This document shows, piece by piece, positions 8,067 to 39,161 of a DNA stretch of 40,694 bases (within the stretch, counting starts at the first letter, position 1; every line of letters starts with the position of its first letter). The translations under genes and the position numbers were made by a program. The notes under the pieces were generated by a model that was not told the origin of the DNA, did not search any database, and saw only the letters and a program-made list of their open reading frames with translations. This DNA comes from Octopus bimaculoides (lineage: Eukaryota): assembly GCF_001194135.2 (NCBI RefSeq), contig NC_068983.1, forward strand, positions 141,412,752 through 141,453,445, written 5' to 3'.

Positions 8067-8087
8067 TCCCAGTACCAACAACGTCAA
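8067..8087 (+). CDS. 21-nt phase-1 microexon (x-P-V-P-T-T-S), linker before VWA1
   Basis: ttttacttttcatttcaAG|tcccagtaccaacaacgtcaa|GTAAGT, with a branch-like aCTAAT about 30 nt upstream. Length is 3n and it joins in frame to the VWA exon at 11403 (A+AT=Asn). Paralogous context at 12592 and 22114. No transcript evidence available. Confidence 0.75.
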
Positions 8088-8559
8088 GTAAGTATCTGCC
8101 AACTAGTTACTGCACTATCAGTGAATAAGCGTTTCTATTTATATTTTGATTGTTCTTACAATTATCAGTCCAACCGACTAGATATTATGGACGTTAAACA
8201 GGAATTCCCTTTACTGATTCCACTCCTTCTTCTACACATTTTACAAATGTACCACTACTACTACTACTACTACTACTACTACTACTACTACTACTACCAC
8301 TACTACCACCACCGCCACCACTACTACGACGACGACGATAATGACGACGACAACTACTACTACTATAGACTTATAGACACCAGTTAAACTATTGGGAAAT
8401 AATATATATTTCTTTTTTATATTGTTATTATTTGAACCTTTATTTAATGGTTTGCTGAGTGAATTCTACGCATCTTATTCCGATAAGTTTTCTTCCAATC
8501 AAACTTAAAAAGAAGTAAATCCACTTGAATTCCAGGACTTTCGCTTCATGGCATATTTT

Positions 8560-8729
8560 GCTGTAGCTAATCGGTTAAGGTAACCGGCTTACGACCGTAC
8601 GAACGTGAGTTCGATTCTCGGCGACCATTTGTGTCCTTAAGCAAGGCATTTATTTCAAATTTGCAAAAATGAGTTGTGCCTGTGATTCAAAGGGCCAGCT
8701 TTGTCACATTTTCTGTCACACTGAATCTC
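8560..8729 (+). mobile_element. tRNA-derived SINE (5' part, runs into gap)
   Basis: tagctaatcggttaagg (A box), gagttcgattctc (B box), ttgtgtccttaagcaaggca central motif; duplicated at 13079. Confidence 0.75.
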
Positions 8730-9330
8730 NNNNNNNNNNNNNNNNNNNNNNNNNNNNNNNNNNNNNNNNNNNNNNNNNNNNNNNNNNNNNNNNNNNNNNN
8801 NNNNNNNNNNNNNNNNNNNNNNNNNNNNNNNNNNNNNNNNNNNNNNNNNNNNNNNNNNNNNNNNNNNNNNNNNNNNNNNNNNNNNNNNNNNNNNNNNNNN
8901 NNNNNNNNNNNNNNNNNNNNNNNNNNNNNNNNNNNNNNNNNNNNNNNNNNNNNNNNNNNNNNNNNNNNNNNNNNNNNNNNNNNNNNNNNNNNNNNNNNNN
9001 NNNNNNNNNNNNNNNNNNNNNNNNNNNNNNNNNNNNNNNNNNNNNNNNNNNNNNNNNNNNNNNNNNNNNNNNNNNNNNNNNNNNNNNNNNNNNNNNNNNN
9101 NNNNNNNNNNNNNNNNNNNNNNNNNNNNNNNNNNNNNNNNNNNNNNNNNNNNNNNNNNNNNNNNNNNNNNNNNNNNNNNNNNNNNNNNNNNNNNNNNNNN
9201 NNNNNNNNNNNNNNNNNNNNNNNNNNNNNNNNNNNNNNNNNNNNNNNNNNNNNNNNNNNNNNNNNNNNNNNNNNNNNNNNNNNNNNNNNNNNNNNNNNNN
9301 NNNTATATATATACATATATATATATATAT

Positions 9331-9685
9331 GGAGGCGCAATGGCCCAGTGGTTAGGGCAGCGATTTCACGGTCATAGGATCGCGGTTTCGATTCCCAGAC
9401 CGGGCGTTGTGAGTGTTTATTGAGCGAAAACACCTAAAGCTCCACTAGGCTCCGGCAGGGGATGGTGTTGCACCCTGCTGTACTCTTCCAACACAACTTT
9501 CTCTTACTTCCTGATTCTGTTGTGCCTGTATGTCAAACGGTCAGCCTCGTCACACTGTCTCACGCTGAATGTCCTCGAGAACTACGTTAACGGTACACGT
9601 GTCTGTGGAGTGTTCAGCTACTTGCACGTTAATTTCACGAGCAGGCAACTGGAACCTTCGACGTCGTAAGCCACGGATTGCCAAT
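9331..9685 (+). mobile_element. tRNA-derived SINE, near full length
   Basis: ggaggcgcaaTGGCCCAGTGGttagg (A box) ... GGTTTCGATTCCc (B box); body matches the minus-strand copy at 2420-2795. Confidence 0.9.
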
Positions 9686-11402
9686 GTATATATATATACA
9701 TATATATATATATAAGCAACAGGATTTCAATTAGTAATGCAGTATGACCAATTCAAGCGGATCCATTTAATTGATCAATGCAATCATTACATCAATTTAG
9801 ATACTGTGCTATCTTGAGCTGCACAAAAAAATATGGGACTTCAACCAGTACGATAAGTTAATATATTTTTTCTTAAATATTTTAACAGAGCAAGAAGACG
9901 GAAGAAATTCATGTTGTCGCTATTGTAGCAAGAATGGCTAAGAAAACAGATTACAATTTCTTTGAATAGCACGGAACACAGTGGGGTCATAGGATTGTAA
10001 TCTATTTCCAGTTTATTTATCTCATTATCATCTACTAAAATTTGAGACTAGAAGACTGTGCATATTTAGGATAAAGAGCAAAAGTGAGTTGACAGCGCAT
10101 GGCTAGCTATTGGTCATAAATATAGTCATAGGTACCACTTCACCCATAAGAACAAAGAAACAAAACTTTAGAAAAAGTAAATTATATAGAAGTAATTGTC
10201 CATAAAAAAGAGGTAGGGTAGGTTTGACTTTAATTCATGATGTTATTACCAGGTAAATGGGCAAAGCACAATGAAATTTAAGATGCTATAATGNNNNNNN
10301 NNNNNNNNNNNNNNNNNNNNNNNNNNNNNNNNNNNNNNNNNNNNNNNNNNNNNNNNNNNNNNNNNNNNNNNNNNNNNNNNNNNNNNNNNNNNNNNNNNNN
10401 NNNNNNNNNNNNNNNNNNNNNNNNNNNNNNNNNNNNNNNNNNNNNNNNNNNNNNNNNNNNNNNNNNNNNNNNNNNNNNNNNNNNNNNNNNNNNNNNNNNN
10501 NNNNNNNNNNNNNNNNNNNNNNNNNNNNNNNNNNNNNNNNNNNNNNNNNNNNNNNNNNNNNNNNNNNNNNNNNNNNNNNNNNNNNNNNNNNNNNNNNNNN
10601 NNNNNNNNNNNNNNNNNNNNNNNNNNNNNNNNNNNNNNNNNNNNNNNNNNNNNNNNNNNNNNNNNNNNNNNNNNNNNNNNNNNNNNNNNNNNNNNNNNNN
10701 NNNNNNNNNNNNNNNNNNNNNNNNNNNNNNNNNNNNNNNNNNNNNNNNNNNNNNNNNNNNTATATATATATATATATATATATATGCGTGTATATATGCA
10801 TATATACATATACACAAATATATATACGCTTGTATAAAAGAATATAGCATAAATATTTTGCATAAACATAAGTAACTGAAAAATATTAATCTAAGAACAA
10901 GAAAAATAACAATTTATAAAGGGTAAAAGATTTATTAGGTAAGCATACAAAGATAAGAAAACAAAATAATATGAATTTATAGAAAATAATAAGAAACACA
11001 TATAAAATACATATAAAGAGACAGGGGATTAAAATTAAAAGCATGAAAAGATTAAGGTAACCTAAATAAGGAAGCAATAGCTATGGAAGTAATGAGGGCA
11101 GTTAAAAGCATTCAGGTCTTTTGTAGCTGTGATATATCGTGTACCAGACATTCTTGTAAAGACGTACAGTTTTATTAGTTCGATGATCAGAAAAATAAAG
11201 CGAAATCTCGATATATTTCGTTCATCTAAATTTGAATTATATTGTGATTGTTTTCAACCCTATAAAACTTTCAAGGAACATATCTAAGGTAAAAATATCG
11301 AAGCGACAAGTATAATATATTAAGTATGTGACATCGAAAATGTTTTTCTCTTCGGTATTCTATTCTTGCGAGGTTTCTTAGACATTTTCCTTCTTTTTGC
11401 AG

Positions 11403-37278: not shown

Positions 37279-37290
37279 CACCAGCACCAA
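37279..37290 (+). CDS. 12-nt phase-1 microexon (A-P-A-P)
   Basis: tttattcatttttttcatgacacaaaAG|caccagcaccaa|GTAAGT; in frame after the 33644 exon; Pro-rich like the other linkers. Confidence 0.68.
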
Positions 37291-37961
37291 GTAAGTAACA
37301 AGTTTAATTTCGTTTCTATTTCATCGTCAAACAAATCATGTACTCATTTACTTGTTACTCCGTTTATGCGCGCGTTAGAGTACCGGCACTTATAAATATA
37401 AATGTATCTATNNNNNNNNNNNNNNNNNNNNNNNNNNNNNNNNNNNNNNNNNNNNNNNNNNNNNNNNNNNNNNNNNNNNNNNNNNNNNNNNNNNNNNNNN
37501 NNNNNNNNNNNNNNNNNNNNNNNNNNNNNNNNNNNNNNNNNNNNNNNNNNNNNNNNNNNNNNNNNNNNNNNNNNNNNNNNNNNNNNNNNNNNNNNNNNNN
37601 NNNNNNNNNNNNNNNNNNNNNNNNNNNNNNNNATATATATATATATATATATACATACATATATACATATATATATATATGTATGTGTGTGTGTGTGTGC
37701 ATATTTTTCAATAATCGACAGATAGAGCTCAGGTGCAAAAGTTATGGACGTAGGCATTACGATTTACACATATATTATACTATATATGATTGTATCAATT
37801 CAATTTAACGAATATATACAAGGCGCGTGATATAAAATATACTACATAAAATACTATGGAAAATCCGATCTTTATATCTATAATGATAAAAAATGATAAT
37901 GAAATGTAACACAATTACTTTCTCTTTTCTTTTCAACATTCGTCATCAAAACCAAAAACAG

Positions 37962-37967
37962 TAACAA
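37962..37967 (+). CDS. 6-nt phase-1 microexon (I-T)
   Basis: Pyrimidine tract, AG-free A/C-rich spacer, then acAG|taacaa|GTAAGT; same architecture as 18603. Confidence 0.55.
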
Positions 37968-39146
37968 GTAAGTATATACATACTTCCCTCAATTTGTAAA
38001 TTAAAGCGTCTGTCTATTTGATAAATCAACTGTTGAAAATTCATTCCAGTACTACTACTACTACTACTACTACTAATACTAATACTAATACTACTAATAC
38101 TACTACTACTGCTGCTGTTGCTGCTACTAAGGCAGTTACTGCTGCTGCTGCTACTAATACTGTTACTATAACTACTACTACTAAGCAATTGCCTCACATC
38201 GTTCTAAAACGGGTTTTCACGATGATACGTACATAAGATCATAAAGCTAAATTGAATGTGAATGTGAATTTATCTATTATATATATATATATATATATAT
38301 ATATATATATATATATATATATATNNNNNNNNNNNNNNNNNNNNNNNNNNNNNNNNNNNNNNNNNNNNNNNNNNNNNNNNNNNNNNNNNNNNNNNNNNNN
38401 NNNNNNNNNNNNNNNNNNNNNNNNNNNNNNNNNNNNNNNNNNNNNNNNNNNNNNNNNNNNNNNNNNNNNNNNNNNNNNNNNNNNNNNNNNNNNNNNNNNN
38501 NNNNNNNNNNNNNNNNNNNNNNNNNNNNNNNNNNNNNNNNNNNNNNNNTGTAAGTATTAATGCAAATATGTATATATATATGAACATATATATATATGGA
38601 GGGATGGATGTATGGATGGATGTGTGTATGTATGTATTTGCGTAAATGTAAGGACAAGCAAATTTGACTTACAAAAATATTAAATATATTTAACTAAAAA
38701 ACTGTACGTTTATATGAATGGTAAAACGTCCGACTAACACGGTTTATATATGATATTATGGATTACAGGTGTTGAGTAACCGTTTTACGAATTCAACAGC
38801 TGTCTCTTGACGCTCGGTGGTATATAATATATATGTGTTTGTATATACTGGTTTTGAATTCACAGATTTTAACTGTAGCATGTATACGGTTAAAAGCTAG
38901 TCCACAAACACACTGTGACAGCTGAGATTAAGTGCAAATCTCATAAATATATGCACATCTATTTACACTATATTGTATTATGATTATAGTAGTGTAACCT
39001 AATGAATATATTCAGGGGGAAAGACTTGAAATATAAATTGTGAAACTACCTACAAAATATATTTTGTTTTATTCTCCATAACAAATGAAAATATGAAATA
39101 TAACTAATTTATTTTTCCTTTCATTTACAACATTCTTCGCCAAAAG

Positions 39147-39161
39147 TAACAACAGTTAAAG
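39147..39161 (+). CDS. 15-nt (acceptor 39146) or 6-nt (acceptor 39155) phase-1 microexon (I-T-T-V-K or I-K)
   Basis: taaCTAAT...aaAG|taacaacAG|ttaaag|GTGAGT; both acceptors are in frame; flanks homologous to 18440-18620. Confidence 0.6.

Follow-up and report, generated by a model that had tools for sequence, protein, structure and literature searches.

In NCAM, the muscle-specific domain (MSD1) hinge between two FnIII modules is encoded by mini-exons of 15, 48, 42, and 3 nucleotides (nt) that undergo tissue-specific combinatorial splicing. The exon-shuffling rule of Patthy concerns module exons of class 1-1, such as the single-exon VWA domains of collagens VI, XII, and XIV and of the matrilins, and EGF exons. 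Here we examine a stretch of 40,694 nt of Octopus bimaculoides DNA (contig NC_068983.1, positions 141,412,752 to 141,453,445; hereafter the window), whose + strand carries large domain exons of a modular gene and, among them, seven candidate microexons of 6 to 21 nt, each named below by its first position. Those at 22114, 37279, 37962, and 39147 were found spliced in RNA and are genuine exons for short hinges that the gene models examined lack, whereas those at 8067, 12592, and 18603 are most likely copies that are used rarely or not at all.

As in the MSD1 hinge, a series of tiny exons in the octopus gene yields short Pro/Thr-rich hinges between extracellular modules. However, the octopus gene shows full inclusion only, and the two proteins are unrelated. 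The octopus VWA (567 nt) and EGF-like (111 nt) exons are phase 1-1, like those of the classical modules. In contrast, classical modules join directly or via the ends of their exons, whereas the octopus linkers have exons of their own.

The arrangement most resembles the constitutive microexon clusters of plants that annotation misses (Yu et al. 2022, PMC8831610). In both cases, several tiny internal exons lie close by one another, are reliably spliced, are conserved across species, and are lost or mis-joined in gene models. The octopus microexons differ in that they belong to an animal gene, in that they reside in extracellular linkers between modules rather than within conserved domains, and in that tandem duplication has copied them along with the modules. 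Three consecutive microexons, of 3, 18, and 22 bp, also occur in RPS24 (PMC12686416). The likeness is confined to the succession of three microexons in a single gene, as those of RPS24 are alternatively spliced, C-terminal in a ribosomal protein, and not frame-symmetric linkers.

In the micro-exon genes of schistosomes, nearly all of the coding sequence consists of microexons, and their skipping makes protein variants (bioRxiv 10.1101/2023.06.21.545858). An initial reading of the window made from its sequence alone (hereafter the first-pass annotation) likened the octopus units to these genes. Symmetric exons of a few codons, long introns, and secreted products are indeed common to both. Nevertheless, the likeness proved superficial, because domain exons dominate the octopus gene, no skipping was seen in the contigs of five runs (in which minor forms would be hidden), and there is no sequence relationship.

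The domains themselves recall the D-assembly proteins, which include von Willebrand factor, the gel-forming mucins, FCGBP, and zonadhesin (PMC4948705; PMC9169620). The octopus gene has VWD and C8, followed by probable TIL and TILa modules in the expected order, and, as in von Willebrand factor, VWA domains too. Its closest relatives in the databases bear the names zonadhesin-like or FCGBP. It differs in that VWA, EGF-like, and D-assembly modules alternate, and it shares 26-57% identity with the nearest relatives that have a name. The PTS domain of gel-forming mucins was not found in the window or in the RNA contigs, which hold only Pro/Thr linkers of 4-11 residues, although the gene extends beyond the window. 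In literature searches, we found no report of linkers encoded by microexons for VWA/VWD proteins, for octopus, or for cephalopods.

Results

Three consecutive microexons join TILa to a VWA exon

RNA evidence was obtained from assembled (Logan) contigs of public runs (denoted X1, X2, and so on), which were aligned to microsatellite-free sub-stretches of the window. A single 781-nt contig from X1 contains the TIL exon, the TILa exon up to position 33815, then CACCAGCACCAA + TAACAA + TAACAACAGCTAAAG, and finally a VWA exon (beginning with GTTGTGAT) with ~94% identity to the first VWA exon of the window (VWA1). The 33-mer between TILa and VWA tiles uniquely on three segments of the + strand: a 12-nt microexon at 37279-37290 (AAG/.../GTAAGT, where slashes mark splice boundaries; it encodes APAP), a 6-nt microexon at 37962-37967 (TAACAA, which completes an Ile codon and gives Thr), and a 15-nt microexon at 39147-39161 (TAACAACAGCTAAAG, encoding ITT[V/A]K). 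The tiling leaves one mismatch, at 39156. The three segments are in the right order, and each is flanked by AG and GT. A tiling of this kind was feasible in 0/300 shuffles, and the 6-nt exon can have come from no genomic site other than TAACAA at 37962.

The same chain recurs in other runs. Directly after 33815, CACCAGCACCAA was found in X1, X4, X15, X17, and X19 and also in run X8, which comes from a related octopus species (organism B). In X17, the chain can be followed from the TIL exon through into the start of the VWA exon, and in both X1 and X17 TAACAACAGCTAAAG is followed by G-TTGTGAT. The first 30 letters after TILa match the 12+6+15 chain in X15 and X19; X4 has the 12+6+15 organization over these 30 letters as well, but with a changed letter at two places (TAAAAA and ..CAATTA..). 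The 6-nt exon is TAAAAA in X4, as against TAACAA in X1, X15, X17, and X19.

Translation is open across all junctions from TILa to VWA (...KCV/APAP/IT/ITT(A/V)K/GCDKAVADV...). The first-pass annotation had predicted the chain KCV-APAP-IT-IK for this linker. KCV, APAP, and IT are borne out by the RNA, but the last exon is 15 nt long and encodes ITT(V/A)K instead of IK. No RNA contig used the 6-nt alternative at 39156.

The introns between the three microexons measure 671 and 1179 nt. Gaps 37412-37632 and 38325-38548 are intronic, as is gap 22285-22340 farther upstream, since RNA joins the exons on both sides directly. Because RNA runs straight across gaps 37412-37632 and 38325-38548, these conceal no constitutive exon. 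The local assembly agrees with DNA run X16. Directly after the 12-nt microexon, positions 37291-37303 read GTAAG TAACAA GT and thus form a second AG/TAACAA/GT copy, 5 nt downstream; this copy is too near the 12-nt exon for separate splicing.

A 15-nt microexon precedes VWD, and an EGF-like exon is hidden in an assembly gap

A further microexon confirmed in RNA is the A-type unit of 15 nt at 22114-22128 on the + strand (CAG/.../GTAAGT, with CTAAT at -33). Contigs of X1, X15, and X17 read ...CACCACAAGTGCCAA + TGCCACCAGTGCTAA, the latter corresponding exactly to 22114-22128, and continue with the VWD exon from 23638. The 15 nt, read with the final base of the exon before them, encode MPPVL ahead of IATRPC, and the reading frame is open across the junction with VWD (...PPQVP/MPPVL/IATRPC...). 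A VPPVL-IATRPC junction had been predicted from the DNA, and this proved right in that contigs of three runs splice 22114 to VWD, with RNA reading MPPVL.

The contigs also revealed what lies upstream of this microexon. A 1247-nt contig of X15 and a 331-nt contig of X1 each contain a VWA 3' end (77 nt, with 4 mismatches to VWA1), then 141 nt, and then VWD. The 141-nt stretch starts CTCATCCATGTGACGCAAAACCATGCAAAA (AHPCDAKPCK, which has an EGF-like look) and ends CACCACAAGTGCCAA + TGCCACCAGTGCTAA, and the X15 contig continues via 578 nt to the TIL exon. Its continuity indicates that one transcript contains the second VWA exon of the window (VWA2), a 111-nt EGF-like exon, 15 nt more, the microexon at 22114, and the D assembly.

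With the exception of the final 15 nt, the printed ends of the 141-nt stretch are not in the window, where CACCACAAGTGCCAA was not found. Likewise, the start of the EGF-like exon and the start of a further VWD (VWD') are not in the window when 2-3 mismatches are allowed. Because these parts of the 141 nt are missing from the window, the sequence must lie in the assembly gap at 21885-21984. This gap is discontinuous, having the VWA exon on its left side and, on its right side, intron sequence homologous to 12475-12591. Judging from RNA, what is missing there is about 480 nt of the VWA exon (the rest of VWA2), the EGF-like exon of 111 nt, and a further 15 nt of coding sequence. The first-pass annotation had named longer linker exons hidden in runs of N as an outcome that would refute its model; upstream of VWD, the 111-nt EGF-like exon in gap 21885-21984 is an exon of that sort and counts against this part of the model. 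In RNA, all VWA 3' ends for which splicing was observed join a 111-nt EGF-like exon, one copy of which is in this gap and another outside the window.

The three upstream units are not joined to VWA1 or VWA2 in the RNA examined

Upstream of VWA2, the + strand has two 21-nt candidates of the A-type, at 8067-8087 (AG/TCCCAGTACCAACAACGTCAA/GTAAGT, with CTAAT at -33; a copy of the unit at 12592) and at 12592-12612 (AG/TCCGAAAACCACCAGCGCCAA/GTAAGT), and a 6-nt candidate of the C-type at 18603-18608 (CAG/TAAAAA/GTGAGT). In the runs examined, no RNA contig contains the unit at 8067, RNA gave no support for that at 18603, and the junction TAAAAA/GTTGTGAT was not found. A direct joint from 11969 to 12592 is absent from seven RNA runs, among them X1, X2, X4, X15, X17, and X18. 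Upstream of the VWA exon at 21800, no RNA junction was found but the ...CAGCTAAAG type. The chain TCN-VRKPPAP-IK-SCDK of the first-pass annotation, which would lead from VWA1 via 12592 and 18603 to VWA2, is thus without RNA support.

The 21-mer at 12592 does occur in RNA (X2, X17, and X18), always after a 111-nt EGF-like exon and before CATGTGAATGTCGAGCATCAGGTGATCCTC, which encodes TCECRASGDP, the start of another VWD domain. Neither of these neighbors is in the window, and the VWA that precedes the 21-mer in RNA mismatches at 14 of 443 nt and is therefore another copy. The transcript segment in which the 21-mer stands between EGF-like and the other VWD is most likely encoded beyond the downstream end of the window.

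DNA run X16 is colinear with positions 11949-12529 without a mismatch, and therefore no EGF exon is concealed between VWA1 and 12592. In RNA (X15, X17, and X18), VWA1 is unspliced from about 11020/11095, that is, it is accompanied by ~300-380 nt of upstream sequence, and one RNA contig passes through the VWA1 donor to 12089, in line with the NCBI model XP_014769910.1, which likewise continues into the intron. Gaps 8730-9303, 10294-10760, 13411-14093, and 16470-17156 are in a region without demonstrable splicing. The units at 8067, 12592, and 18603 are most likely unused or rarely used copies in a duplicated stretch around a largely unspliced VWA1. Note that adenosine-to-inosine (A-to-I) editing was considered for the VWA exon and rejected, because RNA-only changes of other kinds are present too, which points to paralogues.

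Sequence features of the candidate microexons

At the sequence level, the first-pass annotation described the units accurately. All seven AG/exon/GTAAGT or GTGAGT units are present exactly as described, and the lengths are multiples of 3 with an open phase-1 frame in 7/7. Every microexon ends in A or G, so that, as had been claimed, no combination of junctions creates a stop. A CTAAT branch-like site was located 33-52 nt upstream in five of the seven units but not at 37279 or 37962. The acceptor is the first AG after CTAAT in every unit that has this site. TGC, corresponding to the UGC motif near the 3' splice site of SRRM4-type regulated neuronal microexons, was not found in the 12 nt upstream of any of the seven acceptors.

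Note that the bare pattern AG-N(3-27)-GTRAGT is common in the window as a whole, with 38 matches on the + strand and 18 on the - strand, and hence the pattern alone is no evidence for microexons. Symmetry is likewise to be expected: because the module borders are phase 1, any exon inserted between modules must be phase 1-1. The 15-nt length at 39147 is probably due to an AG at 39145-39146 that is absent at the homologous positions of 37962 and 18603, where the inner CAG would give 6 nt.

Inclusion in O. bimaculoides and in a related species

The first-pass annotation had envisaged combinatorial splicing of the hinge exons. This was not seen, as five O. bimaculoides RNA runs from four studies give one 12+6+15 chain. 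A partial 12+6+15 chain was not found in any O. bimaculoides contig, and the 15-nt exon before VWD is the only form in three runs. Microexon inclusion therefore looks constitutive in the tissues sampled, as judged from assembled contigs, which drop minor isoforms.

One contig of X15 uses an in-frame donor within TILa (TGTAAAT/GTAAGA) and passes from 33776 directly to the 12-nt microexon. This donor shortens TILa by 39 nt (33777-33815), by which 13 residues (CKKGDVIKRGKCV) are dropped. In organism B, a 3387-nt contig of run X8 with 94-95% identity contains TILa and an identical 12-nt exon and then continues directly with the EGF-like exon (CTCATCCATGTGACGCAA), so that this transcript lacks VWA as well as the microexons of 6 and 15 nt. 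The difference may be one of gene content, or it may represent a skipped three-exon cassette.

Duplication of the units and variation between individuals

The flanking introns define two paralogous families of units, an A-type (8067, 12592, and 22114, with 37279 related more weakly) and a B/C-type (18603, 37962, and 39147). The flanks of 22114 are 77% identical to those of 12592, and 18392-18620 is 70% identical to 38936-39173. Much closer copies are found upstream, where 7892-8729 is 91.7% identical to 12429-13248 and where the whole of 7892-11114 is a tandem duplicate of 12429-15020, the parts that align being 92-98% identical.

DNA runs X25 and X26 and the 2015 reference sample contain the 12592-type copy in full. 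X16, X31-X35, and X40 hold 23-39% of it, and X16 covers 12572-12760 with 8067-type sequence only. Being complete in some runs and partial in others, this copy is evidently real but varies among individuals. The exon itself has changed more than its surroundings: 8067-8087 and 12592-12612 differ at 6 of 21 positions, while the flanking introns show 5.5% substitutions (binomial P about 7e-4, calculated post hoc). From one RNA run to another, too, the microexons differ in letters that change amino acids. Hinge microexons and modules might conceivably constitute a fast-changing cassette system that evolves by duplication, gene conversion, and perhaps cassette skipping. This somewhat speculative idea draws on the direct joint between the 12-nt and EGF-like exons in organism B, the individual-specific copy, the letter variation, and the faster divergence of the exon than of the introns.

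Domain exons of the host gene

The window holds part of a large, tandemly duplicated gene whose product is a secreted modular protein with VWA, EGF-like, and VWD-C8-TIL-TILa modules. The sequence is AT-rich and microsatellite-rich and is interrupted by 32 runs of N. VWA1, at 11403-11969, is 567 nt long, has phase 1-1, matches Pfam VWA with E=1.6e-49, and is 100% identical to residues 31-219 of XP_014769910.1. Of VWA2 only the start, at 21800-21884, is present, as the exon is truncated by the assembly gap at 21885; this start is 93.5% identical to the start of VWA1 at 11395-11487 (tblastn alignment VGCDKAVADVMLVLDDSGSVGSKNFAKVK).

The D assembly begins with VWD exon 1 at 23638-23891 (Pfam VWD), which RNA contigs match with 0-1 mismatch. 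VWD exon 2 is at 27755-27967, with its 5' 93 nt inside gap 27242-27754. Its translation (LQVKFDGNHR...DKPQK) agrees with the gene model P0023, and its length fits the X15 contig, which has 578 nt from 23893 to 32434. The C8 exon follows at 29003-29274 (Pfam C8), and its final 30 nt adjoin the TIL exon (32434-32627) in RNA. The TIL exon in turn is joined from 32627 to 33644, the start of the TILa exon, in X1, X15, X17, X19, and organism B. The TILa exon (33644-33815) ends in phase 1 and is present in RNA contigs, with the alternative donor after 33776. All of these exons are on the + strand. VWD (84.2 bits; cut-off 22.9) and C8 (42.9 bits; cut-off 23.7) are both above the Pfam cut-offs, whereas TIL (17.7 bits; cut-off 24.5) and TILa (24.9 bits; cut-off 27) are in the expected order but below theirs.

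The module exons are of class 1-1, in that VWA, with 567 nt, has phase 1 at both ends and the 111-nt EGF-like exon is bordered by phase 1 on either side. For the D assembly, phase 1 holds at the two outer borders, and its internal introns are in other phases. Domain exons of 172-567 nt dominate the coding sequence.

Several further observations concern this sequence. At 32508, 32552, and 32555 in the TIL exon, RNA contigs (X1, X15, and X19) read G in place of the A that is found in the window and in DNA run X16, and organism B also has G at two of these sites; the differences could be polymorphism or A-to-I editing. A 277-nt stretch at 3550-3826 recurs with 100% identity at 3837-4113, across a gap of 10 N, a repetition that most likely arose as an artefact of scaffolding. 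A dispersed repeat, with copies of 67-86% identity in both orientations, is found within introns at 2424-2798, 9328-9684 (- strand), 13192-13361, and 35211-35479. A transposon-like pair of open reading frames is located at 20059-20781, between the unit at 18603 and the VWA exon at 21800.

Existing gene models and related proteins

Predictors had been expected to miss exons of this kind, and they did so here: XP_014769910.1 and P0023 both read intron sequence instead. XP_014769910.1, named 'collagen alpha-1(XIV) chain-like', enters the intron at 11970 and stops at 12058, and P0023 runs intron sequence into the VWD exon. The 30-residue signal peptide of XP_014769910.1 was not found in the window by tblastn or with words of 4-5 residues, and the interval 14219-14679, which is the sequenced paralogue of gap 10294-10760, is without a signal-peptide exon. 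An identity as collagen XIV was considered and rejected, since the VWA exon matches VWA family models only and its neighbors are VWD, C8, TIL, and TILa rather than collagen triple-helix repeats and FnIII domains. The name derives from VWA similarity only.

Searches of protein databases returned fragmentary models of the locus but no full-length orthologue with the linkers, and the matches among Logan data were to vertebrate FCGBP-like sequences. The nearest named relatives are octopus proteins annotated as 'zonadhesin-like', with 34-57% identity, and an 'uncharacterized' Argonauta protein with 49%. A zonadhesin-like gene is upregulated in the oviducal gland of Octopus maya (PMC8976471), but it could not be linked to this locus.

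Discussion

We consider it likely, with a probability of roughly 0.7, that hinges in the product of this duplicated modular octopus gene are encoded by real but unannotated microexons, whose inclusion is constitutive to the extent that contigs can show, and that the three upstream copies are probably unused. In the mRNA, very short phase 1-1 exons at module borders encode hinge peptides made of Pro, Thr, Ile, and Lys. Their recognition would be expected to depend on a near-consensus donor (GTAAGT or GTGAGT), a pyrimidine tract, in most cases CTAAT, and the use of the first downstream AG as acceptor. The homology of their flanks shows that the microexons were copied together with the adjoining introns when the units duplicated. 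The composition of the peptides suggests that they may function as hinges and may possibly carry O-glycosylation.

Several observations weigh against this reading. Assembled contigs lose minor isoforms, and hence constitutive inclusion is unproven; in addition, raw-read RNA runs X20-X22 contained no reads on the exons of the gene. The direct joint between the 12-nt and EGF-like exons in organism B could reflect cassette skipping. The microexon letters differ among runs and the window (T/C at 39156, TAACAA/TAAAAA, and CAG/CAA), and there is a small residual probability that a near-identical paralogous unit is the source of the RNA contigs. The stronger form of this last concern, namely that the contigs derive from a paralogous locus elsewhere that the window microexons merely resemble, seems very improbable. 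It would account for the 8 contig mismatches in the 194-nt TIL exon and the one in the 15-nt microexon, and several near-identical VWA paralogues do exist. However, the VWD exon and part of TILa match with 0-1 mismatch, and the exon order and all splice boundaries agree with the window, including three microexons in order downstream of TILa. Moreover, DNA run X16 supports the window sequence, and several of the mismatching letters are also found in organism B, as expected for polymorphism.

If the RNA contigs do represent the locus, the question becomes how freely its microexons are used. A hinge system in which any subset of microexons can be included, which would yield diversity of linkers and modules, is compatible with the fact that all junction combinations are in frame and stop-free, with the use of the in-frame alternative TILa donor in X15, and with organism B, in which the 12-nt exon is joined straight to the EGF-like exon. 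Nevertheless, we regard such combinatorial use as improbable, because only the full 12+6+15 chain was found in five runs and only the 15-nt exon before VWD in three, and because the difference in organism B may be one of gene content. Slightly better placed, but still unlikely, is the proposal that 8067, 12592, and 18603 are genuine exons that link VWA1 to VWA2 in an isoform or tissue outside our sample. Their splice signals (CTAAT and pyrimidine tracts) are intact and their frame is open, 12592 is letter-identical to a microexon used in RNA, and 18603 shares conserved flanks with 37962 and 39147, both of which are used. Against this, neither the 11969/12592 joint nor the TAAAAA/GTTGTGAT joint was present in the runs examined, and the VWA 3' ends seen spliced always go to an EGF-like exon, which is missing from 11970-12591 in both the window and X16. 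The 12592-type copy is also missing or different in several individuals, and the NCBI model sets a signal peptide directly before VWA1, which would leave 8067 outside that transcript. Reliable use of the downstream microexons, together with disuse of the upstream copies, thus remains the preferred reading.

For cephalopod genomics, this locus means that gene models can drop whole linkers and thereby the connections between domains. In the present case, predictors were defeated by exons of 6-15 nt and by assembly gaps, and the databases consequently list two pieces of a single gene, a 'collagen XIV-like' one of 248 residues and another with VWD-C8. The locus also offers a clean natural case of a 6-nt exon and of three consecutive microexons that are reliably spliced, and its paralogues, which differ in exon length by one upstream AG, should be useful for studies of how tiny exons are recognized. 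If the differences between species and individuals are regulated or selected, the locus would be a model for change in hinges and in module number.

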